From Fonticula alba ATCC 38817 (Eukaryota; Protista; Nucleariida), in the NCBI GenBank assembly GCA_000388065.2, contig KB932201.1: 64,000 nt of DNA; one strand, written 5' to 3'. Made by a program: the position numbers and the translations under genes. The notes under the pieces are model-generated. The model made no database searches, was not told the DNA's origin, and saw nothing but the letters and a program-made list of their open reading frames with translations. This document shows positions 1-64,000 of the stretch, piece after piece. How positions within the stretch are numbered: position 1 is the first letter of the stretch; the number at the start of each line of letters is the position of its first letter.

Positions 1-1815
1 GCAATCGCTGCTGGTCCTGGGGCTGGTGGATGAGCTCGGCCTGGCCGGCCATGCGATGACCACCCGCCAGGCCTCCCTGTCATCGGGCATGGTCCTCGGC
101 GGAGAGCCTTTGCTCATGTCGGCGCGCGGGCTGAACCGGCGCTTTGCCGACGATTTGCTTGGTTTGAATTTGGGATCCCTCGGCACTGGGCTGGCGGCGA
201 TCGCACGCGCAGCTCTTGAACCGGTGATCCCCGGTCGAGGTGCGGCGGCGGCCGGCCAGGCCCCCGAGGATGATGAAACCATCGATGAGTTTGCCCGGCG
301 CCGGCTGGGCCGGCTCATGGCCGCGGGGCCGATGTCAGCCATGGCCCACGGCGTGTATGCCGGGGACTCACGGCAGCTGAGCATGCGAAGCTGCTTCGGC
401 CAGCTGGTTCGCATCGAGCAGCATCATGGTCGACTCCTGGGAGCGGGCCTAGTGCCCTTCAGCGTGAGTGACCGACACACGGTGCATGAGCGCCTCCCGG
501 GGCTGGTGGCCAGCCTGCTGGATGGGGGCCCGGGCGTCGGGCTTCGCGAGGACTTCCGCTCGCCCGTGCAGGCGTATCTGTCCCGGACCCCGGCGGCCCT
601 GGTCGATCCGGTGGACCTGGCGGCCATCAGCCTGCTTGGGCAATTCCCCCTCTTCACCGGGGCCCCCTTGAAGGGGGTACCCTGGACAAGGAAGCGGTCG
701 CCATTCACCGGGGAAGACCCCACCGAGCTGGCTCTGTCGGTGTTGCGTGTCGGGCCCAAGCGTGTGCTGTCCCTGCGGCCCGACCGCGCGAATGACCGAG
801 CCCCGGGTCCCAGCGATGAGGCCGCCATTCCGCCGGCTGTTCACGGCAACCAGGCCCTCGTGGATCGCATGGCACACATCCTGAAAGGCAGCCCGAATGT
901 CCACATCCACCTGGGGACCGGGCCGCTGTCGGTTGACCGGCCGGGCCCCGGCGGTCCCAAGTACCGGGTGTCGGCCGGGTCGGCGGTGTCGGTCCCGGCG
1001 GACCATTTGGTGTGCGCCGCGCCGGCTGGCTCCCTGGCTGACACACTGGCCCCCGCCCTGCCCGGCTTGGCCGGAGCCCTGGCCGCGGTCGGGGCCACCA
1101 ATGCCAAAGTGACCGTCGTCAGTCTCCTGGCCCGGGGCCGGGAGCCCTTCTCGCGTACCGATACCCTGGGCTATCTTTGGCCGGCCGGCGAGCAAGAAGA
1201 CAGCATCCTCGGTGTGGTGCTCAACTCGGACATCTTTTCCGAGTGCGCTCTCTCTCTCCCCCTCCTTTCCTGCCCCTCCCTCCCGAGCCGCCTGCATGCA
1301 CTGCCTGCCGCCTTGCCTTTACTGACCACTCGTTCCTCCTTGGCCATCGCTCCTGTCCCATGCCCCCCTTCGACGCATCGGACAGGCATACCCCCAGCAA
1401 TGTCTTTCAGGCAACGGTCATGCTCGGCGGGCACATGCCACCGCCGGAGGACCCGGTAGCCAGCAGCCTGCACCGGGTCCGCCAGCTAACCGGCTTGGAT
1501 TTGGCAGACCCCCGTCTGGAGCTGGACCTGGCCCAATGGACCGGGGCCATTCCGCAGTACACGCGCGGGCATCATCACCGACTGGTGGACCTTGCTGGAA
1601 GGGCCGCCGGCGAGCGGGTGCACTTTGTCGGGTCCGCCTTCACGGGAGTCGCGGTGCCCCAGGTTCTCACCTCGGCATTCATGGCTGCGCGCGGCATCGC
1701 CGCCGAGCTGGGCCTCCATGAGGGCCTGCTGGCTGGCGTTGACGGCCAGGCCGGCTTGGGGTATCACCTTCGGCCGTGGGACACCTTCGCCGAGCTGGCC
1801 GCCGTCACGCCCTGA
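1..1815 (+). CDS. PPOX: Protoporphyrinogen oxidase (HemY/PPOX family), 5' end outside the window; exons <2-1242 and 1386-1815 (alternative in-phase acceptor would start exon 2 at 1398)
   Basis: Frame is open from base 2 (QSLLVLGLVDELGL). PPOX-type motifs: DETIDEFARRRLG, GVYAGDSRQLSMRSCF, LGYLWP..ILGVVLNSD, TVMLGG, AIPQYTRGH, VHFVGSAFTGVAV. The GTGCGC donor at 1243 joins the two ORF-track frames in phase. The N-terminal GxGxxG FAD motif is not in the window. Confidence 0.9.
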
Positions 1816-2249
1816 CCCTCCCCCCCCCCCTCCCGCATCATTGGCAATACAGAGCACCCTCATACTGGTTGGCCCGCCGAGGGAGAGGCGAGACGAAGAA
1901 AGAAAAAAGCACCGAAGGACAGGGAATGTATTGAAGGGTAGAGGAGAACAAAGGGGCGGGGCGAGAGAGGGAGGTGGACATGGAGGGCCAGCAAGCCGGC
2001 CCCCGATCCTTCCCCGAAGCAGGTCTTTGTGGCCGGGCGAGGAGGAGGGAGGGGCACTGGGACACAAGGGTGTTCTTGTACGCGCAGATGAACCTGTGTC
2101 ATCGGCATGCCAACTAAGCATGGCGAAAGGGGGTGTCTCTGCGCGTGCGCTTGAGCCTACACACGCATGCTCATGTAATGTAAAGGCCAGCCCTCTGTAT
2201 CGGAGGAAGGGGTATTTAAATGACCCTCCCTCCACGAATAACTCTCTCC

Positions 2250-2292
<43 letters not shown>

Positions 2293-2320
2293 ACGCGCAA
2301 TGCTTCCCTCATACCCCCTT

Positions 2321-5300
2321 TCAGGGGAGGGGTGGCGCATGCTGCGAGAGGAGGGCCTGTGAGAAGGCGTCCGAGAAGTTGTGCAACTGGTCGCAAGTGC
2401 TTTGAAGGGCCACGGCCAGCGAGATCGCCGCCTCCGAGGAGGGAGACCAGCGGCTGGCAGTTGCCTGGTCGATGAGCTGCACAGCACTCGTGTCCTGGTC
2501 GAGGGCACGCCCGATGAGGAAGGCCGGATCAGCCGTGTCGACTGGCGCCGCACACAGGTCGGACACCAGGGTATTGGCCGCGGCCGCCGGGCAACCCGAA
2601 AACCGGCAAGACTTGGAGGAACAAGGACAAGTGAGGCAGGTGGAATGGCCGGCGAGTGAGCCAGCATCGGCGGACGCAGCATCGGAGGCCATGTGGGTGC
2701 TTGGCTCGGCGGCCGAGGTCGGGGCTACGGTGGTGGAGGTGGCGGTGGCGGTGGCGGTGGCGGTGGCGGTGGCGGTGGCGGTGGCGGTGGCAGTGGAGGT
2801 AGTGGTGGTGGTGCTAGGGGTGGCCGAGGCCGTGGCGGGGGCGACGGGGGCGGTGGCAGTGACAGTGGCGGGGACAGAGCCACCATCCGACGGGCTCACA
2901 CACGTGGGAACCGCCGGGGTGGCAGCGCCTGGAGACAAGGACGAAGAAAGATGGCCACCGGTGCTGGCGCTGGTCGGGATGTCCGGCAGCGGGCGCTGAG
3001 ATAGCCGCGCAATGTTGGCCGCACTGCCCGGCGGCGAGGCGGCCACCCGACCGGCCGGGCACGGGCCATCAACAATCCCACCTGCACCCTCATCCGCGCC
3101 CGGGGTGTTGGTTTGGGGCGAGCCAGGAAGGCGTACAGGGGCTGGCCCTGCCACTGGCACCTTGGACACGCGTGGGTCCACGGAGCATGGCGCCTTTGAA
3201 GAGAGAGGAGCATCCTGGCTGGGCATTTGCGGATGTTGCTGCTGTTGCTGCTCGAGGCCACCTTGGCGCTGCTGGCTCGCCAGCGACCGCATATACTGCA
3301 AGGCATCCTGTGCCGAGGGGATGCCATCAGCAAAGGCGAAGGAAGCCGCCGGCCGAGTGGCCGGCGCCTTGGCCAGAACAGCCATCGGCGCCGGGGCAAA
3401 GAGCCCGGCGCCGAGCTGCGAGGGGGACGGCCCGGCCGCCGTCACCGCCGTCGTCGAGGCCGACAACAGCAATGTCGAGCTGATGGAGCCCAGGAGAGCC
3501 GAATCCGGGCTGACCGGGGCCACAACCGCCGAGAGGCCCGACTGCCCAAGGACATCGGCCACCGCACGCTCAGCCAGCAGGATCAAATCGGCCACAAGGT
3601 CGCGATACCGGCCGAGGGCCATGCTCCACAAGGAGTGGACCACCCGCTCGATGCGCCCGGTGACCATGGCAAATAGAGGAGCCACCTCGTCCAAGGTGAT
3701 GTCCTCCGGCAGGGTGAAGAGAGCCGGCAGGCCGACCAGCGCCAAGGGCGCCGGGGCCAGCCCCACGGCCGGGTGTTTGAAGGAGTCCGCCAGCGAGGGG
3801 AGGGACATGTTGACCGGGGCCACGGGGCCCGACGGCACCGGCGAGGCGGCGGTGGCGGCGGTGGCGGCGGTGGCGGCAGCGGCGGCAGCGGCGGCAGCGG
3901 CGGCATGGCCAGGGGCCGAGACGCCACAGGCTGCGGCCTCTGTCGATGTCCCCACCGGGGTGGCACCGCCGGTTGGAATGACCAAAGCAGTGATCTCGGT
4001 GCACGTGCAAGCGGGCAACTCATCACCGGCCCCTCCCCAGCATGCGGCGCCAGGACCGGCATCGGTCACCGAGAAGGTGGAGTGCAGGGACTTGGTCAGA
4101 GGAGAGGGCAGCCGCGCCTCCGAGTGCTGGCAAGAGGTGCACCGTGAGCCCGGCCCCGAGGGCAGAGTGGCCGCCGGGGCCACTGCCGGAGCCGAGGCCT
4201 GGGCCATCGCGGCCGCCGCCGCCGCCGCATTGGCCTCCTGCAGAGCGTATGCCTTGCGCTCGAGGATCTCCAGGCGCGTGCAGACCGATGCCAGACGCGA
4301 AATGTGGGCAATGGCTGTTTCGAACACCAAGGACGGATCGACATCGTCCAGATGGAAGGACGGCGAGCTCGTCAGCCCGGAGAGCCCCTGCTGCGGGGAG
4401 GCACACAACAGCCCGCCATTGGGCTCGCACGGGGACGCCAGGCCCGAGCTGTGGAAGACTGCCGGCGGAAGGCCCGCCTCCGAGGGCGAGGCACTCAAGG
4501 AGAAGATCGGCGACGGGGCCAGATTGTTGATGCTCCCGGAGAAGCTGAGTGCCAGCGAGGCTGACAACCCGGGCGGCGGGAAGTCCAGCAGGCCGGCGGC
4601 TCCAACCGAGCCCGAGCCCGAGGAAACCATCTGGCTCGGACCCTCGCCATCCGTCTGCACTAGGGCCGCCGACGAGTTGGAAGGCTCCGCTCCGGAGGGA
4701 TTCAAGTTGGCATAGTACTCCACACGACCGGCCAGCTTGCCTGGCAGAAGGAGCCGCATGTTTTCCTTCCCCTCCAGGCCCTTGAGCTTCACCTGACCAA
4801 TGCTGTAGGTAAACAGGTCGAATTGCTCGGTCAGCGAATCGAAGGCCTCCTGCTTGGAGGTAATATGGTTCCAGGTGTCCCCGGAGACGGTGATCTGCCC
4901 GCCATCGGCGGCACCGGACACACGAGCCGCACGGTTGACCATCGGCCCGAAGTAGTCCATGCGCCCGGTCACCGGGTCCGTCTCGCACACGGGCTCGCCC
5001 ACATGGATGCCCATGCGCACGGACAGGCCGCGGAAGATGAGCTTGTGATCATTGCAGAAAACAGCCCGGCCATCGGGCAGCTCCAGAGTCTGTATGGAAG
5101 AAAGATATGGACACCGGGAGAAGGGAGGGGGCATAGGGCGGGGAGGGGGAGGAGGGAAAATGGAGAAGAGGAGGAAGATCGGAGTGGCGTCAGCGTGCAG
5201 AAGAGACAAGAGGACAAGGGCAAAAGAGACAGAGACAGAGAGATGGAGAGATGGAGAGAGAAGAGGGGAGGGGGAAAGGGGCAAACGAACGGACCTCCTT

Positions 5301-8300
5301 CGGCCAGTCGGCCTCAACGAGCTCACTCTGCACGGCCAAGCACCAGCGAACCGCCGACACCGGGTCCTGGAAGGCCACCATGAACGCATCGCCCTCGGTC
5401 TTGACCTCGTAGCCGTCGTACTTGCGCAGATTCCGACGCATGATCTGGTTGTGAATGCGAATGCATGTGCGCATGGCGGTTTCGTTGGTTTCCCAAAGCG
5501 TGGTGGAGTTCTTGATATCGGTAAACACCAGGGCCAGCAGGCCGCGCGGGGGGCCCACCTCGGCGCCCAGGCGAGCCAGGGCCGAGTCGACCACGCCATT
5601 GCGCAGCAGCCGGCGATTGACGGGATTGGGCTTCATCATCTCCGACCGAGGGAGCACCGACAGGACGACCACCGTGATGGCAGTGCTGGCCCCATAAGAG
5701 ATGGCATAGTCGCGGAGCTTCTGCGATGCGCGCGAGAAACTGGACGGCACCGACCGGACGACATCCACCGCCGTCTGGTGGCTGAGGAACTTCCAAAACC
5801 CGGAGCAGCCCATGATGATGAACTCGTCATTGGCCTCGACCTCGAATTCGTACATGCTGGGGTTGGAGATGATCTGCGGGAGGAGATCGCAAAAGCCGAA
5901 AGCTGCATCCGGGAGGGGGAGGGGGGAACATGGGAGGCAGATTGGCATGTAAGACAGAAGGAAAAGAAGCCGGGCAAAGGGAGAAGGAAGAAGGAACGAG
6001 TCGAAAGAAGCAAGCCGAGGACAGGAGGAAGCAGACCGGGAGACAGGGACAACCGGAAAGATGGGCAACATACCGCGCGTCGTCGGGAGCGACCCATTCA
6101 GTAGCCGGGAATTGGCGAACCAGCTACCAGCATTCCGGCAACGGGCGATCTCAGCCGGGTTGTACACATCATGCGGCTGATGCAGGGGGACCGGCTTGCC
6201 GCCCTTGCTGAGAACCGCCTGGGCCACGCCGGTGGCAAAGACATACACCTTGGACCCGCAGTAAACCACCGCCAGGGCCGAGGACCCAGACTGCCCGGCG
6301 GTCGGGTATTCTTCGCCGGTTTGGAGCACGCGATTGGAGTTGATGGACGACGAGGCCGGGCCGGTGGGAGTGGCGCCGCTGCCCTGAGGAGAGGGCCCAT
6401 TGTGCAGCGTGGTCCAGGAGCTGGTGATGCCGTAGCCGGCCGCGTCGCCGCCATGCTCGCCGCCGAAGTACGACGAGAAGACCGTCGGGGCCGAGCCATT
6501 GGCCGTGGTCGGCGAGGAAGGCATGTTCACCTGGCCCACCACCGGGAAGGCACTCGGGCCACTCGAGCCGCCGCTCGAGCCGCCAAGAGACCCGGGCTGG
6601 ACCCCGGCGATGCCGGCCCCATTCCCATTGGCCCCGGCATTGTTGCCATTGCCCAGGAAGGAGAAGGCCCCGGACTTGGAGGATAGCCGGCTGCTGGACA
6701 GCTGGGGCGAAGAGACCACGGCCGCCTCGCGCTGGATATTCCGCCGGGCAAGCATCTGACCCACGGCATAGAAGGCCCGCATCATGGAAGACACGACATC
6801 ATGATTGCGCAGCATGAAGTAGAACTGGCTGGCCAGGTTCTCCCGGAGGAAGAGCGACACATCGTCCCGGAGGAACCCCTCGAAGAGGCAAAACACATCG
6901 GACCCCTCCTTCAGCTCATACACCACGGAGTTGTTGATCGTGGCTCCGTCATAGCTGAGCATGTTGCTGCAGCCGAGACGCTGGTAGCCCGCCTGCGGGT
7001 CGGCATAGTAGCAGTGCTTGATGGCCCGGGCCCGCTCGACCACGCTGTGACTGTGCGAGGTTTCGGACAAGTTGACCAGCAACAAGTCATGCAGGACATT
7101 GATGCCCAGCAGGGACTCCTCGTCGCCGCGCTGGTGCTCCAGCAGACGCGGATTGGCCGACAGGTCCAGATGCTTGATGGCCCGGTTTTGGCCCCAATGC
7201 CACTCGGAGCTGTTGGCCAGGTTGATCTTCAGATCATTGTGTGACAGGTCCACCACTTGCAGGCGCGTGCACCGGCTCAGCGCCGCCGGCAGGCTGACCA
7301 GCTTGTTGGAGTTCAAATACAACCGGACCAAGTTCGACAGCAGGCCCATCTCATCCGGCAGCGAGGTCAGCAGGTTGCCCGACAGTGAAAGGACCTCCAG
7401 CTTGGAATAGAGGCCAATGGACTTGGGGATCTCCTCCATGTCATTGTAGGCCAGGTTGATGACACGAAGCTCCGGCATGTGCTCAATCACCGTGAAGACA
7501 TTGGAGGAGAGCCGGTTGTCCGACAGGTAAATCTCATTCGGTCGCGAGAGGCCGTTGGAGAATTTGGCAGTCGGGTGGGGAATGCGCTCGATCAGGTTGC
7601 TGGACAAATTCAGCAGCAGCAAGCCTCGCAATTGCCAGATCTCATTCGGCAGTCGGCGCAGATTGTTCGAATGCAAATCCAGCTGGTAGAGCGAGGACAG
7701 GTGGCCGATCTCCGGCGGCAGCTCGGACAGGAGGTTCCGCGAGATCGACAGGCACTGCAAGCGACTGAGGGCCTTGAAGGAGGGCGGCAGCATCATGATA
7801 TGGTTGTCATCCAGGGACAGGTCGGTCAACATGACCAGCCGGGCAAAGGAGTCCGGCAGGGTGGTCATCTTGTTGTGGGCCAGGGTCAGCCGGCGCAGGA
7901 CCGACGAGTCGGCCGTCACATCGAAGCGGGTCAAGCTATTCCGGGTCATGGTCAACTCCGACAGAGCCAGCAGCCCCGGGGTCAGGGTGAAGGTGGAGAT
8001 CATATTCCCATCACAGTAGAGCTTCCGCAGGGCCGGGCACTCGCTGACACCGGAAATGTCCGTCAGCATGTTTGACCGGACGTCCAATTCCGAGAGCTTG
8101 GTCATCTGGGTCAGGTCTGGCAGCGACGTGAGCTTGTTGCAGAGGACGCGGAGGACGCGGAGCTATGGGGGGGGGGAGGGGAAGAGGGAGGAGGGAGGAG
8201 GTTAGCCAGGGTGGCGCAGGTGCCAGGACAGGGGGGAAGGAGTGCCCCTGCAAGGGAAGACCAGGAGGAGGAGGAGGAGAAGGAGAAGGAGGAAGGAGTC

Positions 8301-9200
8301 GCACATCGTTGGGCGGGGTGGTAAAGTCGATGGAGGTGAGGTTGCAGTAGGACATGTCCAGCAGCATCAGGCTTGAGATCTGGTTGAGTGCCGTCGGGAA
8401 GGTCTCGAAGTCATTGTTGGACAGGTTCAGCAGGGTGAGGTTGCGGAGCTGGCTGATCTCCTGCGGGAGGGAGGTGATGCGATTGCACTTGGCATCCAAC
8501 GACACGAGCGATGAGGCCAGGCGCTCGATGGCCGCCGGCAGGACGGCCAGCTGGTTGGAGGAAATGTTGAGCTGCTTGAGGTTTGGCACCGAGCAAACAC
8601 CCTGTGGGAGAGTTGTATACTCGTTGCCGGAGAGCTGTGCGGATGGTGGAACCAAGGGGGGATAGAGAGAGAGAGAGAGAGAGAAAGATTAAGGAGTGAG
8701 CAGAAGCACATGAACCGTCCAGGGGCGAGGCAAAGGGAGGAAACGGGAAAAGGGTATGGCACGCACCTTCAGTGCGGTCAGACGCGTGCAGGCCTCGGCA
8801 AAGTCCGCTGGGAAGTCCAGCAGGATGTTGCCAGAGAGATTCATCTCCAGGATCTCGCTGGCTCGCGAGTGAAGCACCGGCGGGATGTAGGGCAGGTTCA
8901 TGTTGGAAAAGTTCAAGTGCTGGATCTGCGACAGGCGAGTGATCTGCGCGGAGAAGTCCAGTGCCTGCTGCGAGTGCTGGTGCGACAGCAGGAACCAGAA
9001 ACAATACCGGTGGTCCATGCGCATCTGCTCGCGAATCATGCTCTCCGGGCTGAAGCCCAGCTGCTCGATGAAGTGCCGGGTGATGACCATCGGCTTCTCG
9101 TGGGGGAGGAGCTGGCGCACTGTGCTCATGTCAAGGGTTCCCCGCGATTGGAGAGAGCGAGAGAGCGAGAGAGAGAGAGAGAGAGAGAGANNNNNNNNNN

Positions 9201-9242
<42 letters not shown>

Positions 9243-11462
9243 CACAGTGGAGGGTCAGCAGGCGGCAGGGTGGGAAAGCTCAATGAGACGGGCGCAAGGG
9301 AAGGGGCGGGGACGCACTTCGGCCCTGGTGCACAAGGTACAAGGTCTGATTCTTGAGGGCGGGATTCTTCTTCTGCAGGGAGGCCATCATGGTCTGCACG
9401 GTTGACCCGTAGGGGATCTTAATGGCACGGTAGTCATTTTGGGTGATGTAGAGCCGAAGAAGCTGCGGGAGGCGCGCCAAGCGAGAGGGAGCGAAGAGCC
9501 AAAGCAAGCGTCAGATGAGGTGCCAGACAGAGGGGCATCCCGGAAAGGGGGGCGCCGGGCAAGGAGGGAGCGACGCCCGGACAGAAGCGTGGGCGCACGT
9601 AGAAAGAGTCATCCTCGTCAGTGGTGGCTTCAGTGAACTCGGGCTGCAGATCCGGCAGCTCGAGCTTGGTGCTCAGGAGGGCAGCAACCGCATTATCCGG
9701 GGCGGTGCCGGACGACGCGTCGGAGCTCGGCGTCGAGAAGGCCAACGGCGCGCCAGGACCGACACGCCACGAGTCCGGCGGTTGCCAGTGCCCACGAGTG
9801 TCCTCCAAGACCTCGGCATCGAACTCGAAGTCGGTGTATGTCGTCGTCTCGGAAGTGTCTGCGCGAAGGGGTGTCGGTGCGTGAAGCGTGAGCATGCATG
9901 CGCATATGTGCGTGTATGTGTGTGTGTGTGTGTGGGGAAGAGAGAGGCGAGGCGAGGCGAGGCGAGACAGGGGGAAAGGAAAGGCGATGGTGAGCAATAA
10001 CGACAACACGATGCTCAGGGGTGAGGGCATGCGCACCGATCTCATTGGCGGAGCTCTTGCGCCGGTCGCCGCGCTTGCGGCCCTTCTTCTTGTCACTCGG
10101 GATCGCCAGGTGGGAGAAGTCGTCTGTGCGACGGATGGCGCGGAGGTTAGAGACGGGGCAAGGGGGAGGGGGGGGGGGGGGGGGGAAGAAGTCCAGGAGG
10201 CGCCTGTAAGCGCTGCCAGGGCGCACCGTCGAGGCTGTCCCCGCGTGAGGGGGAAACCCCAAGGCTAGAACGACCGTGAATGCCCGGCCCCATGGGGCCG
10301 TCAACCGTGGAGGGCGACGAGGGCGAAATGAGAGCCGTCTTGATCATGCTAAAAATGCTCTTCCGCCGGTGAAGGCTCTTTGGCTGCTGCCAGATGGAGT
10401 TGAGCGGGCGGGGCACGGGAACATGGCGGAGCTCTCAGGTGTCAGACCGGACATACACATGCACATGAAGGAGGAAAGAGAGAAGGACAGAGAGAGAGAG
10501 AGAGAGGCAGTCCGGGCCCGGGTGTCGGCGGTCGTACCCCGTCACGAATATCATGGAAGGAGGCCCGGCGGGAGTTGATGCCGGGCGGGGCACCCGGAAC
10601 CGCGGTGACCCCGGTGGTCGAGGGCCCGGAGAAGGAGCTTGACGCACGCTGGACCACAGGGCGAGGGGGCTGATACGGCGAGGTGGGCGAGTGGTTGCCC
10701 TGGATGCGAGTGGCCAGCGGGTGGCTGGCATTCAGGGGCGATGAGTGGGGCAGGCCGGTGGGCGAGGGGGATCCGGCGGCCGAGGAAGCCGCGGAGGAGG
10801 CCATCGTCGGTGGGATTGACCCTGGCGAGGGGGCAGAAATATCATCGGTGCTGGTGGAATCGGTGGCCGGCGGAGGCTCGGTGGCTGCGCGTGGGGGGCG
10901 CGGCGAGCCGCTTGGTGTCGAGGCGCCCGAAATCGATGGCGATCCGGACAGCGATCCGGGCACGACGGCCGGAGAGCCGCTGGCAGCCAAATAAGGAGCC
11001 CTGCCGGCGGCGGTCATCGTGGCTGGAGGGGGAATCTGTTGATCCATGTCAGAGTCGGACTCGGAGGAGATATAGCTCCCGCGCTGGGCCTCGCCGAGGA
11101 AATCCGCCTGAAGGGTGGCCAGATTGGGGCTGGAAGAAGCTCGGAAGGAACCCATCGAGCTCAGCGAATCTGCGTACCGGGGAAAGAGCAGAGAGGCAAG
11201 CGAGGGGAGGCACAAGGTGAGACGGGGGCAGGGAGGGAGGGAGGGAGGAAGGAAGGGAGGGAGGGAGAAAGGAAGGGGAGAANNNNNNNNNNNNNNNNNN
11301 NNNNNNNNNNNNNNNNNNNNNNNNNNNNNNNNNNNNNNNNNNNNNNNNNNNNNNNNNNNNNNAGGGAGGGAGGGAGGGAGGAAGGGAGGAAGGGGGAGAG
11401 AGCATACTTGACGAGGAGGAAAGCTCCTCGGCGATTGGTGGCAGAGTCAGATCCATTGCCAT
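2321..11462 (-). CDS. CYR1: Fungal-type (Cyr1-like) adenylyl cyclase, ~2510 aa: S/P-rich N-terminus, Ras-association domain, LRR array, PP2C-like domain, class III cyclase, long C-terminal tail. Exons 11462-11408, 11169-10538, 10431-10227, 10123-10037, 9858-9599, 9462-9318, 9119-8767, 8634-8305, 8162-6074, 5902-5295, 5089-2321
   Basis: Cyclase motifs are intact: LVFTDIKNSTTLWE, GYEVKTEGDAFMVAF, RGLSVRMGIHVG, MDYFGPMVNRAARVS. About 20 or more LxxLxLxxNxL repeats lie in 7150-8950. RA-like segment: DSFYLLRLYI..RQLLPHEKPM..EQLGF. PP2C-like segment lies in 5640-7000. Exons sum to 7533 nt, a multiple of 3. The acceptor of intron 2 (GAG) is the weakest junction, and extra introns in the last exon cannot be excluded. 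Confidence 0.93.
2735..2890 (-). repeat. Coding (ACCGCC)n hexamer repeat encoding a Thr-Ala tract in the cyclase C-terminal tail
   Basis: GGCGGT repeats on the plus strand translate to TATATATATATAT on the minus strand. Confidence 0.9.
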
Positions 11463-14400
11463 GATGCCAACGTCAAGGATCCGGATCGCGGGAGAGTGGG
11501 GGAGGGGGGCTATGCGCGCGCGCACACACACACACACTCACACACGCTCGGATACAGACAGACACACACACACACAGGGGGAGGGACTGCATCGGTGACA
11601 AGGGCGGAAAGAGAGCGCATGGGTGGGTGGAGGGGAGTGGTGAGCGGCGGCATGGTCGGTCGAGATCCGGGCAGATCGGCCAGCTGACGCACCGGACACA
11701 AGTGGTGGCCTCCTTCTTTCGGATGGGAGCCGGCGCGTGGCACTATCTCTCTTTCTCTCGTGCTTGGTCTCTCGGGCTCTCTCTCTCTCTCTTTCGCGAG
11801 GGCGCGAGCGCGAACGCGCACCGGGAAGGGGAGCGGGGGTGCGCCTTCGGCCTGCACGAGGGAGGGGAGGGAGGCAGGCGGTGTCGCAGGCGGGGGCGGG
11901 GGGAAGGGCGGGCAGTAGGGAGGAGAGAGGGGGCGGAACAGGAGGGTGGGGTGGGGGGGCAAAGAGTAGTGGTGGGTGGCGGAAGGGGGCAGGCAGGGCA
12001 GGCGGATCGGCAAGGGGGGGGGGGATGGAGAGATTAGGTGCCGGCGATGGGCCGGCGGGCCCCGGGCTGCTCCCTGGCCTCTGATTTAGGCATCGGGCGC
12101 GGACCGACCAGGGGCCAGGGCGACCCCGGGAAAGGGGCTGAGGCCCAGGCGGGTCGCTGGCCACCATGGCTGAGGGCCACGACGGTCAAGCCAGCTGGCG
12201 GGAGCGGGGGGGGGGGGGGCGGCGGCAGAGGGGGAACAGACCAGCCACCAGGGGAGCCCACGGCGCCTGGTGGGGAGACTCGCCGGGCAAATGCATGCAC
12301 ACGCGTACGCACTCGGAGAGGGAGTTGTGGCAGCGGGGTCTGAAGGCGCCGGCAAGCAATGCGCTCGCGCGTGCACACACACACACACACAGGCACAAGG
12401 GCAGCTGCAAGGAGAGTTAATAAGCCCTGGCCAGGCATTGGGCGAGCATCTGTCGGTGGTCTCCTCAAAGCCACAGCCACTCGGGCTTCCAAACGGCAGA
12501 CCGAAGTACGTGCGTTCCGTGGCGGCGGCCCGGCGGCTGCGGCTCCCCCCCCCCCGCCGGAGGGCGGTGGCACGGTCGGGACCGGTGGCTCGCGCTGCAA
12601 CTCATGGGTGGAAAAGCCCCAGCAGGGGGGGGAAGGGGGAACCGACCGAGCGAGGATGCCCCCGGATGACCGGTGCACCCACAAGTAGCCGGCTTGGCCC
12701 CCATGTTGCGGAGCTCGCATTCTCGCCCTCCCACACACACGCACCGGCCCCTTGGCTCTCGGGTGTGTTGTGCAAAAGTGCTTGTAACGTTGGGTATGCA
12801 AGTGTACGTATGTATCTTTTTGCATGGGTACATGGGTGTGTCGGGGTGGACAGGCGGGCGGGGATCCATCCATCGCAGACATCCTCCCTACGGTAATGGG
12901 ATCGCGAGGCCAGCCGTGTGTCCGTCCCTCCCCGGCATGCCGGCCGAAGCGCGCATGCGAACCCCTGCGAGACGGGCCCAGCCCTGTCCGGAAGGGCCGG
13001 AGGCGAGAGGATTAAGCCACGCGCCGGCAATGGCCAGACCATCGAAGCGCGCCGGCCGGAGCACGGCCGCCCCTCCTTGCTGCTCGCCCCCCCCCCCCCC
13101 GGTCCGGACGTTGCGGCCGCCCAAGCGACCACGGGCCACGGCTGAGGTCCCGACATGCACACTGCGGGTGACCCCTTGACCCTCGACCCCCGGCCCCCCC
13201 CCCCCGGCCCCCGGGCTCCGAGTTCCCGTGCCGGCTCCCCGGCCGGAAGAGGTTGGAGTCGCGCGGACAGCTCTCAGGACGCTCAGGAGCCTGAGGGGAC
13301 ATGGCTGACAGACGCCTATGCGTCCTCACCGGCAACCGGGGCCCACCCCGGGGAGGACACATTGGGCGCCCTGGACACGGGCGCCCATGTCCCAATCGTC
13401 CGGGGAAACGAGGCATTCGGTGGTCCAAGGGGGGGCGGCATCAGGAACTCACACCGGATTCCCCCCTCCCCGCCCACCGCCGCCCCCGTGCCCCTGCCCC
13501 GACCTACCCGGCGGCGAAAAGCACCCCACTCCCGGGGGGAAGCGGGGGGGGGGGGCGAGAAAGGGGGATCACACTCTGTCCTCCCCCCCCCCCCNNNNNN
13601 NNNNNNNNNNNNNNNNNNNNNNNNNNNNNNNNNNNNNNNNNNNNNNNNNNNNNNNNNNNNNNNNNNNNNNNNNNNNNNNNNNNNNNNNNNNNGGGTGGAA
13701 AAGCCCCAGCAGGGGGGGGAAGGGGGAACAACAACCCGCACCCCCCCCCCCCCCCCCCAAACCGATGGGCCTGCCAGCCAGGTAGGAGGGGCCAGGTCCC
13801 GCGGCGGGTCTCGCCTCCTTCAGGGGGAGCCGCTCCCCCTGGTGTGTGTGTGTGTGTGTGTGCATGTCGGAGCATGCTGGAGCGGGATGGTAGAGGGGGA
13901 TGGCAGGCCGGTACCTGGCCCATGCGCGGCACCTACGGCGCCTTGGGCACCGGGCCGCCGCCACTTGGCAAGGGGCCGGTGGCAAGCGTAAACTAAACCT
14001 CATCCCAGGAGAATAATGAGAGCATGCGTATATGTGTGTGTGGGTATGTATGCCCGCGCGCAGGTATGCATGCCAGCGGCTCATGCACGAACCGCCAGCC
14101 TCTCCTGCTTGGACTTGCCTCGAGATGTTGCCATAGCGATCTTGCCCTTTGCCGTGGAGCCGCGGGCGCCCTTCCCACCCCGGGACATGCCGGGGAAAAT
14201 GAAAGTGCGACGACTTGCGGCGGGGGCCGGCCGCTTGCCCGGCCCGGGGTGGGCTTTCGGGAAACAACCAGGCAAGCGGGCCTCGGGCAGAGACGGGCAG
14301 GCCGACGTCCGCGGCTTAGGGGACCCCTCGCCGGAGGGAGGACCGATGCCTGGACGCAGTCCCGCCGGGGGATGAGCGTGCGCGGGTGTGTCCGCCAAGC

Positions 14401-17116
14401 GGGCGCGCATGCGGGGCCGGCTGCGAGCACATGGGCGAGAGCGTGGGGCGGGAGGGGGAGGGGGGGCGGGGGCAGCTGAGTGACCGGCCCCGACCACGTC
14501 CCGAGGGTGGGAAAAGACCCCGAGACGAGGGACGATGGGAAGGTGTGTCCCTGGCTCCCGGGCGTCCGACCGTCCCCGGCGCCCCGCCCGCCCCCCGGGA
14601 AGCGACTTGGAGAAGAACAACCGGCCTGAATATGGAGAATGGGCGACCCGGGATCTGGTAGTGTGTCCCCAACCCGGCTACACCAAACAAAGGTCGCTAT
14701 GTTCGTCGCCCCTCGGGGGGGGGGGCGCGGAAGAGAAGGAGGGCGTTGGAGTTAGCCCGGGCGCAGTCCGCCGGCCCATCTCACAAGCCCGGAGGGCGCC
14801 TTTGTCCTTGCTGGAGGAATGCGGCGGGCGTTTCCAGGGGAGGGCTCTTACGGGAAGGGGAGGGGGGGGGGCTACAGCCGGCAAAAGCACCCGACCGGCG
14901 GGGTAATCCATTCAAAATACGCAATATTTATTCCCCAGTAGCGGAGGCAAGGTATGCAGCAAATGCATGATGGGCTCCGTGGATGGTCCTCCCTGGAGCG
15001 GGCCTTTGGGGCTCGAGCTCCATCGGGGGCGCGAGTGAGTGATATTCTGCGGGGGACATCTGGCGCGAGGGCGCCCTCAGGGGAGGGGTGTGTGTGTGTG
15101 TGTGTGTGTGCATGTGTGCTCCTCGCTGAGAAGGGACCGGCAGGGAGCGGGAGCAGGGTCTTCCAGGAAACCGCGGCCCCAGGGGCACACAGGCCTGACA
15201 CGGGCGGGCGCGGGGGGGGGGGGGGGGGAGGGGCGCGTTGCTTTTTCTCTCGCGCGGATCTAGCGACTACTCCCTTCGGCCGCGCCAGCCTCCGATCCCC
15301 CCTTGGCCGGCCGACGGCCGGGCTGGGCGCACGTGCGTGTGCTCCATCCCGCCTCTGCCGGCGGGTGGCCTCCAGCACTCGTCCGGACGGGCGCGTGCCG
15401 GAAGCGTTGCCTCCCCCCCCCCCCCAGCGTCCATTGCCCCCCTCTTGAGGGGGTGGTAAGGCCCCCAAGATGGTTGAGCGGCTGGCGCATGCCGATTCCT
15501 CGAAAATGACTGGCCGAGTCGGTGGCGGGCGGGCGGGAGTACGCGACTGCCAGAGCCCCTGGGACACACAGCATGTCGGCACCCTGGGCGGGCCGGCCCA
15601 TGCGCCACAAAGGGCAACACCAAAGGGCAGGACACGGGAGCAAGAAAGGGAAGAAGGAAAAGCCCGACTCCCTCGCCAAAAGCCCGGGGGGGGGGGGGGG
15701 GGGGGGGGGGCCATGCAGGACCACCCCGTCCTCCGTGGCATATTGTGAAATGGGCGCCGGCGGTCAGGCCGGTAGTTGAATTTCGGATAGCAGACCACCC
15801 TACGGGGACTGAGGGGCGCGGCGGCGCGGCGGGGGGGGGAGCACCCCCGATGCTCGAGGCCTCGCACCTGACGCTGGTCCTCCTGTGTGCGCGGCTCCGT
15901 CGCGCACGCTGATGTTGGTCCCTGCGCCGACACGGCGGGGGCATGGCCCAGCCTGGCCCTCTCGCCTGGCTGCAGAAGGGTGGGGCCATCTGCCCCTCTT
16001 CGGGGGAAGGGAGAGGCATGCCGCCAAACAGCATGGCGACTCGTGGGCCGGTCCGCGGCGAGCTGGCTCGCCCCCACCCTGCCGCAGGACCCGATAAACA
16101 AAGACCCCAGCTCCGGCGGACCCATCGCGCCCGACCACCGGTCCTCCCCCCCCCCCCCCCCCCCGTGGTTGGAGATGACCCTGCCCCCCCCCCAATCCCC
16201 CCGCCGCTCGGGGCCCCATGCAGGGACAACGGCGGGATGACCCCCTCCCCGTCCCCCGCCCCCCACGGCACCCAGCGCGGTGTGGCCTGTCTTCCGCCCA
16301 AGACCCGGGGCCGAAGCCCCTCACGGTGGCCGGGCGATCGGCAGCCTTTTTTCCGACAGGGCGCCGCGTCCCCGACAGGCCGGGCGCTATCGACTCCGCC
16401 CCCTCCCCTGGTCAGAGGAAAACTCACCGGAGAGTCTTGTGCGAGAGAACGAGAGGGAGAGAGAGAGAGAAGACCCCGGCGAGGGCGTACCCAGAGTGCA
16501 TGCCAGGTGCGGGGGAGGGGGCGGGGGGGGGAAAGTTGCTTCGCCCGCGGCATGGCTTCCCCCTCGGCCTGCATCTTGGGGGGAAAATTCGCCAGCCGTA
16601 CATCGTCTCGACCCCTCTTTGACCAAAGGCCACTTATGCCGTCCCGCCAGGAGGCAGGCCGAGCCCCGAAGGGTACAACACACCCGTGCCCCTTGCATGA
16701 ATCAAAATGCGGGGGCGGCCGCAAGGAGGCAATATCGCCCACCGCCCGCCCCCCCCCCCCGGGCGTCTGGTCAGGGGGCTGCAGCCGAGGCGCTCCTGTC
16801 ACAAATCGCCCTGCCAAGAGGGATCACCTGGCACATGCGACACCCGCACCCACATCACGTTCGACTGTACTCCGGCCCCCTTTTTTGTCTGGGTCTGTCC
16901 CCGAACGCGCGTATGTGCGCGCCGTGCCGCACCCCCCCCCCTCGCCTCTTGGCCATCCCCAGAGAAGAGAGAGGCATAGCCGGAAAAAGGAAAAAGAGCC
17001 ACCGACGTGGTCACAGCCACAGCCTGGGCCCCAGTTCTCTTACTCCCCCCCTCCTCTCTTCTTGCCCCTCTCTCCCCCCCCCCCGCTTTCCCTCCCCGCC
17101 CCCCTGGTTCTCGACA

Positions 17117-17455
17117 ATGTCGTCAGTGGAGCCCTCAACTCCCTCGTCCCAGGCTCCGGCGTACGCTTCCGAAGTCAGCGTTGTCCACAGTGAGGCCCTC
17201 TTGCGGAGGTACCCCTCCCCGCCGGCTCCCCCTTCGCTGGAGGGAGCCATTGCCACGCTCTTCGATCCGGCCGATCCTTCCTACCGTGCGGCCCCGGTGG
17301 ACTTCCCCTACGGTGTCCCACGTTGGAGCAAATCCCGGCAGCAGTGTGTCTCGACCAAGCCCTTCCCCCAGGGCTTCCGAGTTCAGGCCGACCCGGACGA
17401 AGTGGACGTCCCGGATGCCGGGCCGGCTGCCGCTTCCACCGGCGCCCGGTCCTAG
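17117..17455 (+). CDS. Hypothetical 112-aa protein (single exon), no recognised family
   Basis: ATG..TAG ORF (MSSVEPSTPSS...PVDFPYGVPRWSKSRQQCVSTKPFPQGFRVQ...TGARS). Codon usage resembles neighbouring genes. It is preceded by a polypyrimidine 5' tract like those before CHMP5 and NRDE2, and followed by an A-rich stretch at 17545-17572. No homology recognised. Confidence 0.45.
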   Translation: MSSVEPSTPSSQAPAYASEVSVVHSEALLRRYPSPPAPPSLEGAIATLFDPADPSYRAAPVDFPYGVPRWSKSRQQCVSTKPFPQGFRVQADPDEVDVPDAGPAAASTGARS

Positions 17456-18572
17456 TGTCGTATCCCGCCGTCGCGGTGCTGACCCGGAGGCGTTCGTCCT
17501 TCCTCTTCCCCCTGACTCTCTTCCTCTCGGTCTCCGCAATGGCAAAATGATAAAAGAAAATAGAATAGAAACTCTCCGATCGTCCGCCCAGTTTTTCTTC
17601 CCGCCATCCGATTGAGAGAGAGCGCCAGCAGAGGGCAAGGTGGAAAGAGATGTGGGGCAGGAGGGCACCCGGAAAGTGCCAACGCCCATGAGGTCACAAC
17701 GGACCCCAATCACACCACTGTCCACATGCCCGCAGCACGGCATTTCCGAGCATTCCGCAGGCTTTCCCCTTTTGGCGGTCGCCTCGACGACCTCCAGTTC
17801 CGGGGCCGATCAACACCGTTCAAGAGGGTTGGAATGGGGCGGCGAGGCGCGCGGGGGGCGGCACGGAGAACGTAGGTGTGTGTGAAGAAAGAAAGAAAGA
17901 GCGAGAGAAGCAGAAACGGAGGGCGCGCCAATCATCCCCCGGCGCCGGTACCCGAGGCTGGGCATAGACTCCGGGGCCTGGGGGCCATCGCACAAGCGGG
18001 GCTACATGAGTCTTGAGCGCGCTGCCTGATGTTACCGGAACTCTCTACTCTATGAGGTGGCATGCCGGAGGCGCAAAACACCCCGCCCCCCTTCCAGGAG
18101 AAGTCTACCCAATCGGCGGGTCTTCGGATGCGGCCGCCAGGCGCCATTCATGGGAGGGCACCAGGGAGCGTGTCTTCATCCCCCCCCCCCCTCCGTTCTC
18201 CCTGCCGAGATAGGAAGAGCCGATCAGGGACGGGCGGAGGAGGGCCCACCTCTTCACCCTTGCTGGCGTCCGTGGCTGGATGTCGTCCTGGCCGGGGGGG
18301 GGGGTCTCCGCGGGGCGCCTGCCTTGGCGCATTCCCCTGGCCGATTACAGGCCGGCAGTTTCTCTCTCAGACTGGAAAGTAGAGGGGGGTGGAGGGGGGG
18401 GGCATCTGTCGCACAGTTTGGTTCAAAGCAAGCCTACGTCCCACCGGGCCCACCCCGGCTGCTACCCATGCACACCTCATTTCTCTCCCTCCCCCCTCCC
18501 CCCCCCGCGTTTTTCTCCCCTTCGTCGTTCTCCCTTCCCTCCTTTCCCTCCTTTCCCTGGGCTCCTCGCATC

Positions 18573-18948: not shown

Positions 18949-18986
<38 letters not shown>

Positions 18987-19739
18987 CCCCCCCCCTCTCG
19001 GCCTCTCTTACTGCGAATCCCCACAGCAACAACTCAAAAACAAGGCTATCATGCTGATTCGCCAGAAGCGCGGGTGCGTATGCATCTCCCTTGCTGATGT
19101 GTTTCCTCGGCTTCGCGCGCCTCTCCTTGTCTTGTGTCAACCCGCCATCCATCTCACCTTCTTCTCTTCGACCGATCTCGTCTCTCTCTTTCTCTCCCTC
19201 TTTTTCTCCTCCTTTCTCTCCCTCTCGTTCTCTCTCTTTTCTTGGACTCTCTTCCCTTCCTCTCCTCCCTCTCCCTTCAGATACGAGCAGCAGAAGAACT
19301 CCATGCTCCAGACGGCCTTCAGCGTGGACCAGGTTCAGATGACCACCGAGAACCTTCGCCTCACCATCGACACGGTACGCTCTCCGCATGTGGCCCGCAC
19401 CGCTTCGACCTCCCGTCTCTTTCTCGACCAACCCCCCACTCACTCTTCTGTTTCCGGTGGTGATCGGGGCTCACTCGCTTCCCCACAAACAGGCCCAGAC
19501 CATGAAGCAGACTGCCAAGGACATGAAGCGTGAGTACAAGCGCCTCGATATCAACAAGATCGAGGCCATCCAGGACGACCTGCAGGACATGATGGACCAG
19601 GCCAACGAGATCCAAGAGATCATGGGCCGTGGGTATGATGTGCCGGATTACATCGATGAGGCCGATCTCGAATCGGGTGCGTGTGGTTCTCCCTTCCTCC
19701 TCCCTTCCCCCCCCCCCCCCCCCCCCCCNNNNNNNNNNC

Positions 19740-19792
<53 letters not shown>

Positions 19793-21080: not shown

Positions 21081-21128
<48 letters not shown>

Positions 21129-22625: not shown

Positions 22626-22703
<78 letters not shown>

Positions 22704-44113: not shown

Positions 44114-44145
<32 letters not shown>

Positions 44146-47165: not shown

Positions 47166-47196
<31 letters not shown>

Positions 47197-47923: not shown

Positions 47924-49372
47924 TGGCGGCACCCTGGCGTCCGACGCGCCTTCCCTTGTCCTTCTTGCCGTCGTCGCTGTGTTATGCCCGCTGCCGCCTC
48001 CCCCCCCCATTCCTTCTCCACCTGTCCATCTGGGCCCGCCGGTCGGGCTTTGGCGCTTCATCGCATCACGTCAATGGGTGCCTGGGTGTGGATACGCACA
48101 TGCACACGCCCATGCGCGGCTACATGGTCCTTCTCCTTTCCTTCCGGATGTATATGTGTCTCTGGACATTCGGCAGAGAGAGGGACAGAGAAAGGGACAT
48201 GATAGCGCCGAATGGAGGAAATTCGAACAGCCATGCTCCCTGAAGCATGGCCTCATCCCTTCGCCCGTGCAGTCTGTGCCGGAGATGCCTCATAACTTGC
48301 ATCTGGGCACGGACGTGTGGGGTCGATTAGCCCGTGGTGTTTCTCTTCGCGCCTGCCTCCCCCCCCCCACCCCCCCTCTGCCGCACATGCGGGCTCCTCT
48401 ACACATCCTCCTCCCCCTTCCCCCCCCTTTCCCTTGCCTCGCTCAAGCTGTACTTTTATTGCGGCTCTGGCGCGCGCGTGGCCCCCGGCCACTGTTGCGA
48501 TCGTCATGTCCCGCCCCTTCTCTTCGAGCTCTGGCCCCCCCCCCCTCCCTCCTGGTCTTGCGCGCGTGCCCTGCCGCGCACAGGTGCCCATCCCTCCCCC
48601 ACCTCCATGTTCCTCGTGTTTAGATCCATGTAATACACACGAGATGCCAACGCACATTGAGCCCCGCCTGTTTTCCTCCCCGCCGCCGCCGTGCCTCCGT
48701 CGTCTTTGCTGCGTCGGCCATCGGGGATGCCTCATTCGCCGTGGGGGGGGGGGGGGGGGNNNNNNNNNNNNNNNNNNNNNNNNNNNNNNNNNNNNNNNNN
48801 NNNNNNNNNNNNNNNNNNNNNNNNNNNNNNNNNNNNNNNNNNNNNNNNNNNNNNNNNNNNNNNNNNNNNNNNNNNNNNNNNNNNNNNNNNNNNNNNNNNN
48901 NNNNNNNNNNNNNNNNNNNNNNNNNNNNNNNNNNNNNNNNNNNNNNNNNNNNNNNNNNNNNNNNNNNNNNNNNNNNNNNNNNNNNNNNNNNNNNNNNNNN
49001 NNNNNNNNNNNNNNNNNNNNNNNNNNNNNNNNNNNNNNNNNNNNNNNNNNNNNNNNNNNNNNNNNNNNNNNNNNNNNNNNNNNNNNNNNGGGGGGGGGGG
49101 ACGGGCAAGTGTGTATGTGGATGCATATGTACATATGGATGTGTGTGCGCGTGTGTGCGCGTGTGTGCGCGTGCCTTGCCTTCGTTGGTGGCGAGGCCAT
49201 CTACCCTGCGCGCGATCGGCCATTCGTCTGTCGCTCCCTTCCTTTCCTCCGCCCTCCCCCTCTTTGTGGTGGCAGCCGATTTTTTTTTGGCATTTTTCTC
49301 GGAGCCGCCTGTAGACAGCTCGCCACCGGGTCAAAGGCAGACCCACCCCTCTCAACTAGTCCCCCCCCCCCC

Positions 49373-49415
<43 letters not shown>

Positions 49416-49498
49416 CCAAGTTCTCCTGTCTCCCCTCCTCCGTCCCCCCTGCCCCTGCTTGCGCTTTCTTCCCACATCTTCGCGCCGGTCTGGCCAAG

Positions 49499-53209: not shown

Positions 53210-53296
<87 letters not shown>

Positions 53297-53341
53297 NNNN
53301 NNNNNNNNNNNNNNNNNNNNNNNNNNNNNNNNNNNNNNNNN

Positions 53342-53418
<77 letters not shown>

Positions 53419-54091
53419 GCACACGGGTGTGCCTCCCCTCTCCATGTGTCTCTTTCCGCCCTGCCTTCCCACGCATCTTCCTTTGTCCCTTTCATCAGCG
53501 CTGTCCACCAATTAGCTGCCTCTAATGGTTATGTCCCCCCTCCCACTTACTCGGTCATTCTCCTGGATGTGCACTTTCTTCAACAAAAAGACGCCTCTTG
53601 TCGAAGGCTCTGTTTGACACATCAGCCGGGCCGAGTGGCGAGCGGGCCTTCCGTAGCCAGTTTGGCGAAGACCACGCTGAAAGCCGGCTTTCGGCCGAGG
53701 TAACCCTTCTCCGGCTCTGCTTGGCTTTGGTCCGGGCTTCGGAAGTCGAGGCCACGAGTGACTTATTGACCATGGCTCACGCGCAGCTTGAGGCTCTCCA
53801 GCTCCAAATGCGCGACCAGCCCTTCGCCAACCGCCTCCTCTGGCGGTCGGTGGCCCGGTTACGGGCACTCCCCCCAGCAGCCAACGCCACAGCCACGGTC
53901 TTGCAGCAGCGTGTTGACCTGGCCGCGAAGCTACTCCAAACCGTGGGACAACGTTACGCTGGTGATCGAGACCCGGCTTCGGCCTGGATGGCCAGCCTCT
54001 CCGAGAGCCGCCTGGCATGCGAGCTGTGGCTTGCTTCATCGGCGTCCAGCGAGTCGCGCGTCCTGCGCAAGGTTCTTGGTGCGTGCCTGTC

Positions 54092-54177
<86 letters not shown>

Positions 54178-56264: not shown

Positions 56265-57831
56265 GGCATGGTCTCTGTGTCTCCTGCCCTGTTGGAGGAA
56301 TTCCTCTGCGCGCCTGTACACGCCATCTCCAGTCTGTAGTGTGTGTGTGCGCGTGTTAGGCGGGGGTGGATGGCGAAGGCACACATGCATCCCATCACAA
56401 GCACACAAACCCAAACACTGGCAAACAGGCACACCGGGAAAGACCCTGGCTGAGGTCCCCTCCCTCCCGCCTGTGCACAAATAGAGTGATAGATATTTCG
56501 CCTCGACCACTCGGCTCCGGGACCCTGGTGGGGGGTGCCCTCTCTTTGGCCCACAATCCACATTCCTGCCCCGATGGCATAACTTGTGGGGAGAACACCC
56601 TCGAGGGGTAATGCCCAACGTCAATAGCCAGCCTTGGGATCCGCGAGAGGTTGCCAACGGATTGCGGAATCACGAGAACATACTTGTGTTTCGGGTCCAG
56701 TGGTGGTTTCTGTGCGCGCTCTTTCCCGAGGATGGGCGGGAACACGGCGGCTGAGTGTGCCTGTGCTGCTCCCCCGCCGTGCGCGCGGACATCGGCGTGA
56801 GAGGGGCAGCCCGGTATGACATTTCCCCGATGGCCGTGTGTAGTCGTCCCTCTGCTCTCATGTAGCACACTTCCCGGCGGGCTGGCCCGGTGGGTTGTCC
56901 TCTGTCCGTCAGATGTGCGCGCGCGCGCGCAAAGAGCAGGGGGGGGGGGCGGTGCCGGACCGGGAGATGCAGGACCTGTGGAGCGCGTGAGCGTCGATCT
57001 GCCCATGGTCCTGGCGTCTCGGTTCGGGGTCATTGACCGCCTGGATCCCCCGCCCAACCGCCACCAGGGCATGGCTTTCTCCCCCCCCCCCCCCCCCCTG
57101 GGAGGGGGATATGTGTCTCGAGGGGGGGACGGCCGAACGGCGGCCGGAACCGGCCCGGCGCGCCGGCCGAGCAGTCCGGCGGTGGTGTTAGCCGCGTAAC
57201 GTCGGCTGGCGCTGGCACTTGGGCGGCAATTGTTTGTGGCCAGGTGCAGTTTCTCGCGGGCGCGGGCGCGAGCGCGGGCGTGGGCGCTCCCCCGCGCGCC
57301 AGGACCCCGCCCTACTTCTCTGTATGTGTCTTTCTCCCAGTGCCCGCCCAGGGTCTCTCTCTCCCTCTCTTGCGGGCAGCCCTCCGCTATCGCGCGAGTG
57401 TATCGCTGGCACACGCGCACGCGCCGGCGCGGGAGGGATTTGAAACGCATCGGACCTAAGCTCAAGGGCACCGGCTGGGATCTAGCGCCACTCCCTGTCC
57501 CCTCCCCCCCCTCCCCCTCCCTCTCTTTCTTCGTCTTCCGTTCTCCCGTCCTCCCCTTCTCCCTTCCTCCGGCCTCCTTTCAAGTTCTCCTTCCTTTTTC
57601 CTTGTCCGTCGCCGCGAGGGATCGGCGCTGCTCCGCCTTCATCCTCCGTTCCCCTCCTACTTTCCTCCCCTCCCNNNNNNNNNNNNNNNNNNNNNNNNNN
57701 NNNNNNNNNNNNNNNNNNNNNNNNNNNNNNNNNNNNNNNNNNNNNNNNNNNNNNNNNNNNNNCCCCCCTACCCCACCCCACCTCCCGGTGTGTGTGGCTA
57801 TGCCGGCTGCCGTTGCCCTCGGCCACCCATA

Positions 57832-63381: not shown

Positions 63382-63419
<38 letters not shown>

Positions 63420-64000
63420 GGAACTCCGGCCGTCTCTCCTCTTCAAAGGGGCTGGCTCTTCTCCCGGTGTTTACTGACGATCCTCCCTCCGTGGGATTGG
63501 CTCCGCCAGGCATCGGTCGATGCCGCTCGGCTCTTGTGCGCCAACACGGCCGAGGGCATGATGCCCTCCCTGGATGCCGCTGCTTCTGCTGTGAGTCCGG
63601 CGCCCGAGCCGGACATCCTGGCCCAGCTTGGGCAGGTGGCCAGCGCGGCCCCGCAGACGGCCGTGCACCTGGACGCCGCCACGGCGCGGGCCCACATCAC
63701 ACGGGCCGTGTCTGCGGTTTTCTCCTCGGTGGGCTTCAGCCACCTGAGTGGCCGGGCGTTGGACGCCACCACCGAGGTACTGGAGGAGTACCTTGGCCGG
63801 GCGGCGCGCCTGGTGTCGGCATCCCTTGCCTCGGCTGGCGCCTTGCTGTTGGAGAATCCGGACCTGTCCCTGGCCCAGATGTCCATGGATTCGGAGTTCT
63901 TCCACCATGTGGCTCGGCAGCTGGGTTTGAGTCGGGGCTTCTCGCCGGCCAGCGTGGTATGTGTTTCCTGTTGGCATCCGCCATGTGGCTCTGATGGGCC
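57832..64000 (+). CDS. SPT7: Spt7-like SAGA subunit (bromodomain plus histone-fold), more than 1711 aa, 3' end outside the window; exons 57832-59328, 59417-60076, 60225-60314, 60462-60795, 61036-62944, 63081-63276, 63510-63956, then intron
   Basis: The pre-bromodomain motif KSRWDSPDRLNQAELYD resembles the Spt7 SKW..ERIGQEELYE segment. Bromodomain: FAKPVSRKEYPNYHELIRNPVDLSTI..FCDDVELIFTNCETFN. Histone-fold: ARAHITRAVSAVFSSVGFSHLSGRALDATTEVLEEYLGRAARL. All junctions are in phase. Exons 5 and 7 lie in a frame missing from the ORF track. Confidence 0.82.
58267..58320 (+). repeat. Coding (TCGGCA)n hexamer repeat encoding a Ser-Ala tract in the Spt7-like N-terminus
   Basis: Read directly; translates to SASASASASASASA. 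Confidence 0.9.

Follow-up and report, generated by a model that had tools for sequence, protein, structure and literature searches.

Introns of Fonticula alba use donors with C at +4, and U1 has probably co-evolved to match them

Most eukaryotes have an A at position +4 of the 5′ splice site (5′SS; GTRAGT). Few RNA sequences of eukaryotes are as conserved as the 5′ end of the U1 small nuclear RNA (snRNA), where nearly all of them carry ACUUACCU. For a stretch of 64,000 nt from Fonticula alba ATCC 38817 (contig KB932201.1, C1:2496549-2560548; hereafter the window), a first-pass annotation had described a different state, with a pyrimidine at +4 in 55 of 55 modelled introns (GTRCGY) and no +4 A. 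This locus raises the question of whether this donor type is real and, if so, which part of the splicing machinery changed with it. As shown below, it is very likely that the major-spliceosome introns of this organism use G-U-(G/A)-C-G-(U/C) and that U1 has co-evolved to match.

We rebuilt the introns independently of the 55 earlier models. In the Viterbi gene finder, the coding states were second-order and 3-periodic and intron lengths were modelled explicitly (35-700 nt), with GT and AG as the sole requirement; the finder permits GT-AG introns only and cannot detect GC-AG or other donors. Training was unsupervised on the window and 26 other loci, 20 of which were 10-kb stretches at regular intervals on contigs C1, C4, C8 and C14 of the assembly (31.3 Mb, 214 contigs). 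In the first round the finder had no donor model, whereas in the second round it used a self-trained donor matrix. A high-confidence set was defined by both exons being at least 60 nt long, a gene score of at least 60, an intron length of 50-400 nt and the absence of N; it holds 125 introns from five contigs. All donor statistics rest on predicted introns, partly checked by homology, and not on RNA.

Without a donor model, the finder most often placed GTGCGT (15) and GTGCGC (8) in the window and GTGCGT (25), GTGCGC (17), GTATGT (9) and GTACGT (5) at the 26 other loci, and there was no class of GTAAGT or GTGAGT donors in either. The donor types listed before (GTGCGT, GTGCGC, GTACGT and others) were thus recovered by a finder given no more than GT and AG. 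With the self-trained matrix, 60 introns were predicted in the window, with C at +4 in 47, T in 11 and A in two, and both introns with +4 A adjoin implausible first exons (13 and 24 nt). For the 149 introns at the other loci the counts were 103 C, 33 T, six G and seven A. In the high-confidence set, +4 is C in 84%, T in 14%, A in 1% and G in 2% of the introns. The neighbouring positions are also biased, with G (64%) or A (26%) at +3, G (93%) at +5 and T (62%) or C (27%) at +6. Among the 38 window introns of this set, +4 is C in 34 and T in four, and +5 is G in 33, which confirms the described +4 pyrimidine and lack of +4 A.

U1 genes were sought with the Rfam model RF00003. In total, two matches were obtained, at C4:2020014-2020171 on the plus strand (64.1 bits, E 1.6e-14) and at C1:17298-17456 on the minus strand (57.4 bits, E 1.4e-12), both matching model positions 1-166. 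Their 5′ start is UAACGUACCUACG (also given as UAACGUACCU), compared to the consensus AUACUUACCUGG, and the recognition sequence is ACGUACCU in both genes instead of the usual ACUUACCU, with a G for U at position 5. This position pairs with +4 of the 5′SS (PMC10581693). The ACGUAC of both genes is the exact complement of GUACGU. Its G5 allows Watson-Crick pairing to a C at +4 and wobble pairing to a U, but no pairing to A or G, and C and U together account for 98% of the +4 positions.

Both copies harbour the stem-loop 1 (SL1) loop GAUCA(AC/CG)AAGG, the stem-loop 2 (SL2) loop AUAGCAC (CAUAGCAC) and the Sm site AUUUUUG (AUAUUUUUG), identical or nearly so, and their 13-nt 5′ ends are identical. 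Comparison of the copies suggests that both are old and constrained as RNAs, because 21 of 47 predicted pairs have changed on both sides and still pair. A U1 copy with ACUUACCU was not found in the 31.3-Mb assembly, either by the covariance-model search or by two whole-genome pattern searches, the first for the 5′ end plus the SL1 loop and the second for the 5′ end plus the Sm site. Although both patterns accept G or U at position 5, each search returned just the two U1 genes, both with G5.

Furthermore, a TCTGAGGGC box lies about 90 nt upstream of both U1 genes. It is common to two U5 genes, in one of them as TCAGAGGGC, and is found at about −82 of U6, where a TATA box follows and a TATATAAG box is present around −30. 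The TCTGAGGGC box was located at L003:1409-1420 and around position 1745 of L004 (minus strand), and also at loci L001, L043 and L044. This shared box is probably an snRNA proximal sequence element, and its presence lends indirect support to the expression of the U1 genes.

How well the altered U1 fits the donors was examined in the high-confidence set. Of its 125 donors, 122 pair better with ACGUACCUA than with ACUUACCUA, with a mean of 6.14 versus 5.25 pairs. In addition, an A at +3 is present in 9 of 15 donors with +4 U, compared to 22 of 95 with +4 C, 73 of which have G instead (Fisher P = 0.01). This preference fits the idea that two adjacent wobble pairs are disfavoured in the U1 helix. 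We regard the U1 change as the most likely cause of the donor shift.

The G+C content of the window is about 64%, and one could argue that composition is all that is needed: in the C/T-rich introns of a genome with 64% G+C, a C at +4 would be background and the U1 difference incidental. Intron interiors indeed contain 45% C and 10% A (with G at.19 and T at.26), the information at +4 is a modest 0.55 bit over this composition, and there are other GC-rich lineages that have +4 C with a standard U1. However, C at +4 reaches 84% against the 45% of the interior (binomial P = 1.5e-19), pyrimidines are in excess (P = 5e-15) and A is significantly short (P = 3e-5). The signal is also position-specific, with 1.87 bit at +5 and about 0 bit at +7 and +8, and in each of the two diverged U1 copies the sole base off the consensus is exactly that which pairs with +4. 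The C excess and A shortage at +4 are therefore partly background, yet go far beyond composition. Composition as a full explanation, which the first-pass annotation had named as what would overturn its claim, was rejected on the +4 C excess and the lack of signal at +7 and +8, and we consider composition alone unlikely.

Hexamers were also counted on both strands of the window. GTACGT and GTGCGT occur 2.8 and 2.3 times more often than expected from a second-order Markov model, GTAAGT and GTGAGT occur at about the expected frequency, and GTGAGG, GTGAGA and GTAAGG are rarer than expected. GTGTGT was counted 365 times, with about 56 expected. Microsatellites of the (GT)n and (CT)n type are abundant in the window and can mimic donors, and some GTGTGT 'donors' of weak models may be false.

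Another concern is that the motif was produced by the modelling, with donors being chosen for fitting it. The first-pass annotation had itself cautioned that the motif was used to choose some ambiguous donors, and our self-trained second round could reinforce its own motif. The first round speaks against this, as GTGCGT, GTGCGC, GTATGT and GTACGT ranked top there with no GTAAGT or GTGAGT class. Moreover, Pfam coordinates continue through about ten of the junctions, and a further one is set by an annotated protein. The result stands in spite of that caution, and an artefact of model building is highly improbable.

For these junctions, exons were searched singly against Pfam, and a junction was taken as supported when the profile coordinates continued across the exon pair. 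In the first gene of the window, encoding an amine oxidase (protoporphyrinogen-oxidase-like), the annotated protein P0001 matches exon 1 at 100% identity and continues from ...DIFSE to HTPSNVF, which requires the donor GTGCGC at 1243-1248 (plus strand) and an acceptor near 1384. The GTACGC donor between exons 4 and 5 of a Snf7/CHMP5-like gene (19375-19380, plus strand) separates Snf7 positions 53-83 from 84-143. In the V-ATPase subunit D gene on the minus strand, two GTGCGT donors were supported: that at 33844-33849 lies between ATP-synt_D positions 2-65 and about 68-106, and that at 33531-33536 between the part reaching to about 106 and the part from 108. Three donors are in a RA-LRR-PP2C-cyclase gene on the minus strand. 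These are GTGCGT at 9312-9317 (RA_3 positions 1-47, then 51-93), GTATGT with +4 T at 6068-6073 (PP2C 30-172, then 174-253) and GTCCGT at 5289-5294, where continuity is approximate (exon 9 covers Guanylate_cyc 10-88, and exon 10 covers 97-172). On other contigs, a HECT junction with the donor GTGCGC has Pfam positions 184 and 185 on its two sides, and two Ints3_N junctions with the donors GTATGC and GTATGT have 204 and 206, and 302 and 302, respectively. Uninformative pairs were also met; continuity in RPC82 was only rough, and several exons have no Pfam family.

The RA-LRR-PP2C-cyclase gene spans positions 2321-11155 (minus strand) and encodes about 2,470 aa. With RA_3, many LRRs, PP2C and a class III cyclase domain, it has the architecture of fungal adenylate cyclases, and such a fungal-type gene fits a relative of fungi. 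A second cyclase-domain gene was seen at locus L017. The intron at 9317-9120 (minus strand) of the large gene holds an assembly gap (9191-9200); RA_3 spans both sides, showing that this is one gene and that the gap is intronic.

Overall, the window is gene-dense between 1243 and 63957, where the 60 finder introns have a median length of about 158 nt, are C/T-rich on the sense strand and start mostly with GTGCGT, GTGCGC, GTACGT, GTGTGT or GTATGT. It has 11 runs of N, of which five (39627-39636, 45855-46215, 48760-49089, 53297-53341 and 57675-57762) were absent from the earlier program-made list of gaps. A gap lies inside four of the 60 introns, and none of these four entered the high-confidence statistics. 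Some of the very small first exons must be erroneous, and models of this kind are outside the high-confidence set. At 11500-18500 and 42600-46300, where there are gaps, the finder gave no convincing gene models despite long open frames; the first-pass annotation may have modelled introns in these regions that our finder did not reproduce.

Uniform donors could also result from the recent spread of a single intron family, such as introner-like elements. In some algae, uniform intron ends stem from introner families. However, an all-against-all BLASTN of the 125 introns returned no more than 14 short hits, most of them low-complexity C/T tracts, and the introns did not group into sequence families. 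An introner origin was rejected on this basis, and we give it almost no credence.

In addition to a changed U1 5′ end, the first-pass annotation had predicted an altered U6 ACAGAGA box or the loss of METTL16 or SNRNP27K as possible grounds for the donor type. A driver at the U6 step would resemble the situation in budding yeasts, where +4 A to U switches in Saccharomycotina are linked to the loss of METTL16 and SNRNP27K, and it draws on the fact that +4 lies opposite the central A of ACAGAGA once U1 has left (PMC10581693). The Rfam models recovered two U6 copies, both with an unaltered ACAGAGA (AUACAGAGAAGAUUAGC). The second copy (L002:1501-1593) adjoins a run of N, and the assembly lacks its 5′ stem and promoter. 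The U2 GUAGUA and the U5 loop 1 (GCCUUUUAC) are standard as well. SNRNP27K is present (PF08648, 90 bits, profile positions 2-55 of 56), and so is a gene of the METTL16 family, in which pieces of the Methyltransf_10 profile (7-29, 41-82 and 177-272) lie in separate exons and the NPPF motif is intact. Loss of either factor as the cause is not supported by these genes, and a cause at the U6 step is largely refuted and very unlikely. Of the earlier prediction, the U1 part was borne out by the G5 of both genes, whereas the U6 part and the proposed losses were not.

With U1 as the most likely cause, a sequence of events can be proposed. C-rich introns and GC-biased mutation probably moved +4 to C first, and the U1 change would then have fixed this state. 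Selection on the stability of the U1:5′SS helix would keep the pyrimidine at +4. After the hand-over to U6, the +4 C would be placed opposite the central A of ACAGAGA, with which it makes no standard pair. The U1 expressed from both loci is expected to start with (U)AACGUACCU.

Several points weigh against a co-evolved U1. C-rich introns explain part of the +4 C excess, and the C found at +6 in 27% of the donors remains unpaired with A3 of U1. Both U1 matches are below the Rfam RF00003 gathering score of 69.5 bits. There is a small chance that a canonical U1 copy sits hidden in an assembly gap. U1 expression, the exact U1 5′ end and the splice junctions are predictions from the genome sequence. 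Finally, +4 C can exist without a change in U1, and cause may run in either direction between the two: Thecamonas trahens and the Mamiellales have such donors with a standard U1 (bioRxiv 10.1101/2022.06.08.495308). These lineages share the GC-rich genome and the +4 C with F. alba, but their U1 keeps ACUUAC, whereas a compensating G is present in both genes here.

The closest known system is that of Mastigamoeba balamuthi, for which Roy and Bowser reported a U1 with ACGUAC together with GUGCGC donors (bioRxiv 10.1101/2022.06.08.495308). The features of this type of co-evolved U1 and 5′SS were all found in F. alba: ACGUAC in both U1 genes, +4 C donors across five contigs and no detected U1 with ACUUACCU. 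Both organisms have the same U to G change at U1 position 5 and a +4 C with a preference for G at +3, and both are intron-rich and GC-rich with short introns. They differ at +6, where U is preferred in F. alba (62%) and C in M. balamuthi. The M. balamuthi assembly comprises 57.3 Mb in 1,926 scaffolds with 60.7% GC (PMC8136499), compared to 31.3 Mb, 214 contigs and about 64% for F. alba. If F. alba is an opisthokont, its U1 change arose independently of that in M. balamuthi. Besides M. balamuthi, F. alba is a second lineage that combines ACGUAC with +4 C donors, a kind that is already known and very rare. A literature search for ACGUACCU as a string returned unrelated oligonucleotides only.

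Other lineages are less similar. In Entamoeba, a U1 with AACAAAC goes with GUUUGU donors, and a more complex U1/donor case has been described in Physarum (bioRxiv 10.1101/2022.06.08.495308). As in Entamoeba, the U1 recognition sequence of F. alba is re-tuned to an atypical donor consensus; there, however, other bases changed, at two positions, and the lineage is parasitic and intron-poor. Among the Saccharomycotina, ACUUACC is invariant in all 227 genomes and nine outgroups with a detected U1, and Parker et al. considered that U1 might carry a compensating change at position 5 (PMC10581693, eLife 2023). F. alba and the Saccharomycotina have in common a lineage-wide change at 5′SS +4. Unlike in the Saccharomycotina, the new base is C and not U, U1 has changed, and the METTL16 family and SNRNP27K have been kept.

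We also scanned metagenome contigs for the G5 recognition sequence combined with the two U1 loops. This yielded 14 contigs, 13 of which contain Rfam-confirmed U1 genes. Some contigs have the G5 form only, and Rfam-confirmed G5 U1 genes (ACGTACCT) are carried by L027/L031/L040, L030/L036, L033/L038, L039, L029 and L032. On L038, G5 and standard U1 copies are 500 nt apart, and L032 holds a cluster of U1, U5, U6, U4, 5S rRNA and tRNA genes. Three further contigs, L034, L035 and L037 (Ga0115011_10117186, Ga0209404_10051779 and Ga0115011_10036121, respectively), are tandem arrays of three to nine U1 genes, some with U4 and U5 in between. The arrays mix ACUUACCU, ACAUACCU, ACGUACCU, ACUCACCU, ACGCACCU and ACACACCU, and their recognition sequences vary at positions 5 and 6 (ACTTACCT, ACATACCT, ACGTACCT, ACTCACCT, ACGCACCT and ACACACCT), where UU, AU, GU, UC, GC and AC are found. 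Hexamer counts on the contigs with a G5 U1 were too small to show the donor type.

Judged from these contigs, the G5 variant recurs in uncultured, mostly marine eukaryotes. The mixed arrays could serve an uncultured, probably marine eukaryote as a U1 repertoire, with different U1s for different classes of donor. Tentatively, and with more doubt than confidence, we suggest that re-tuning of U1 is a recurrent route where introns drift at +3 and +4, with F. alba as an independent opisthokont case and the arrays as a U1 repertoire.

That ACGUAC and +4 C donors occur together in a second lineage indicates that an intron-rich genome can change, throughout, the code by which U1 recognizes introns, here in a culturable relative of fungi. 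As a practical consequence, any gene finder that has learned GTRAGT donors will place introns of the F. alba genome wrongly. The organism also separates the two steps in which the 5′SS is read, with U1 re-tuned while U6, the METTL16-family gene and SNRNP27K are unchanged. It therefore offers a natural test of the role of N6-methyladenosine (m6A) in U6 when no intron has an A at +4.

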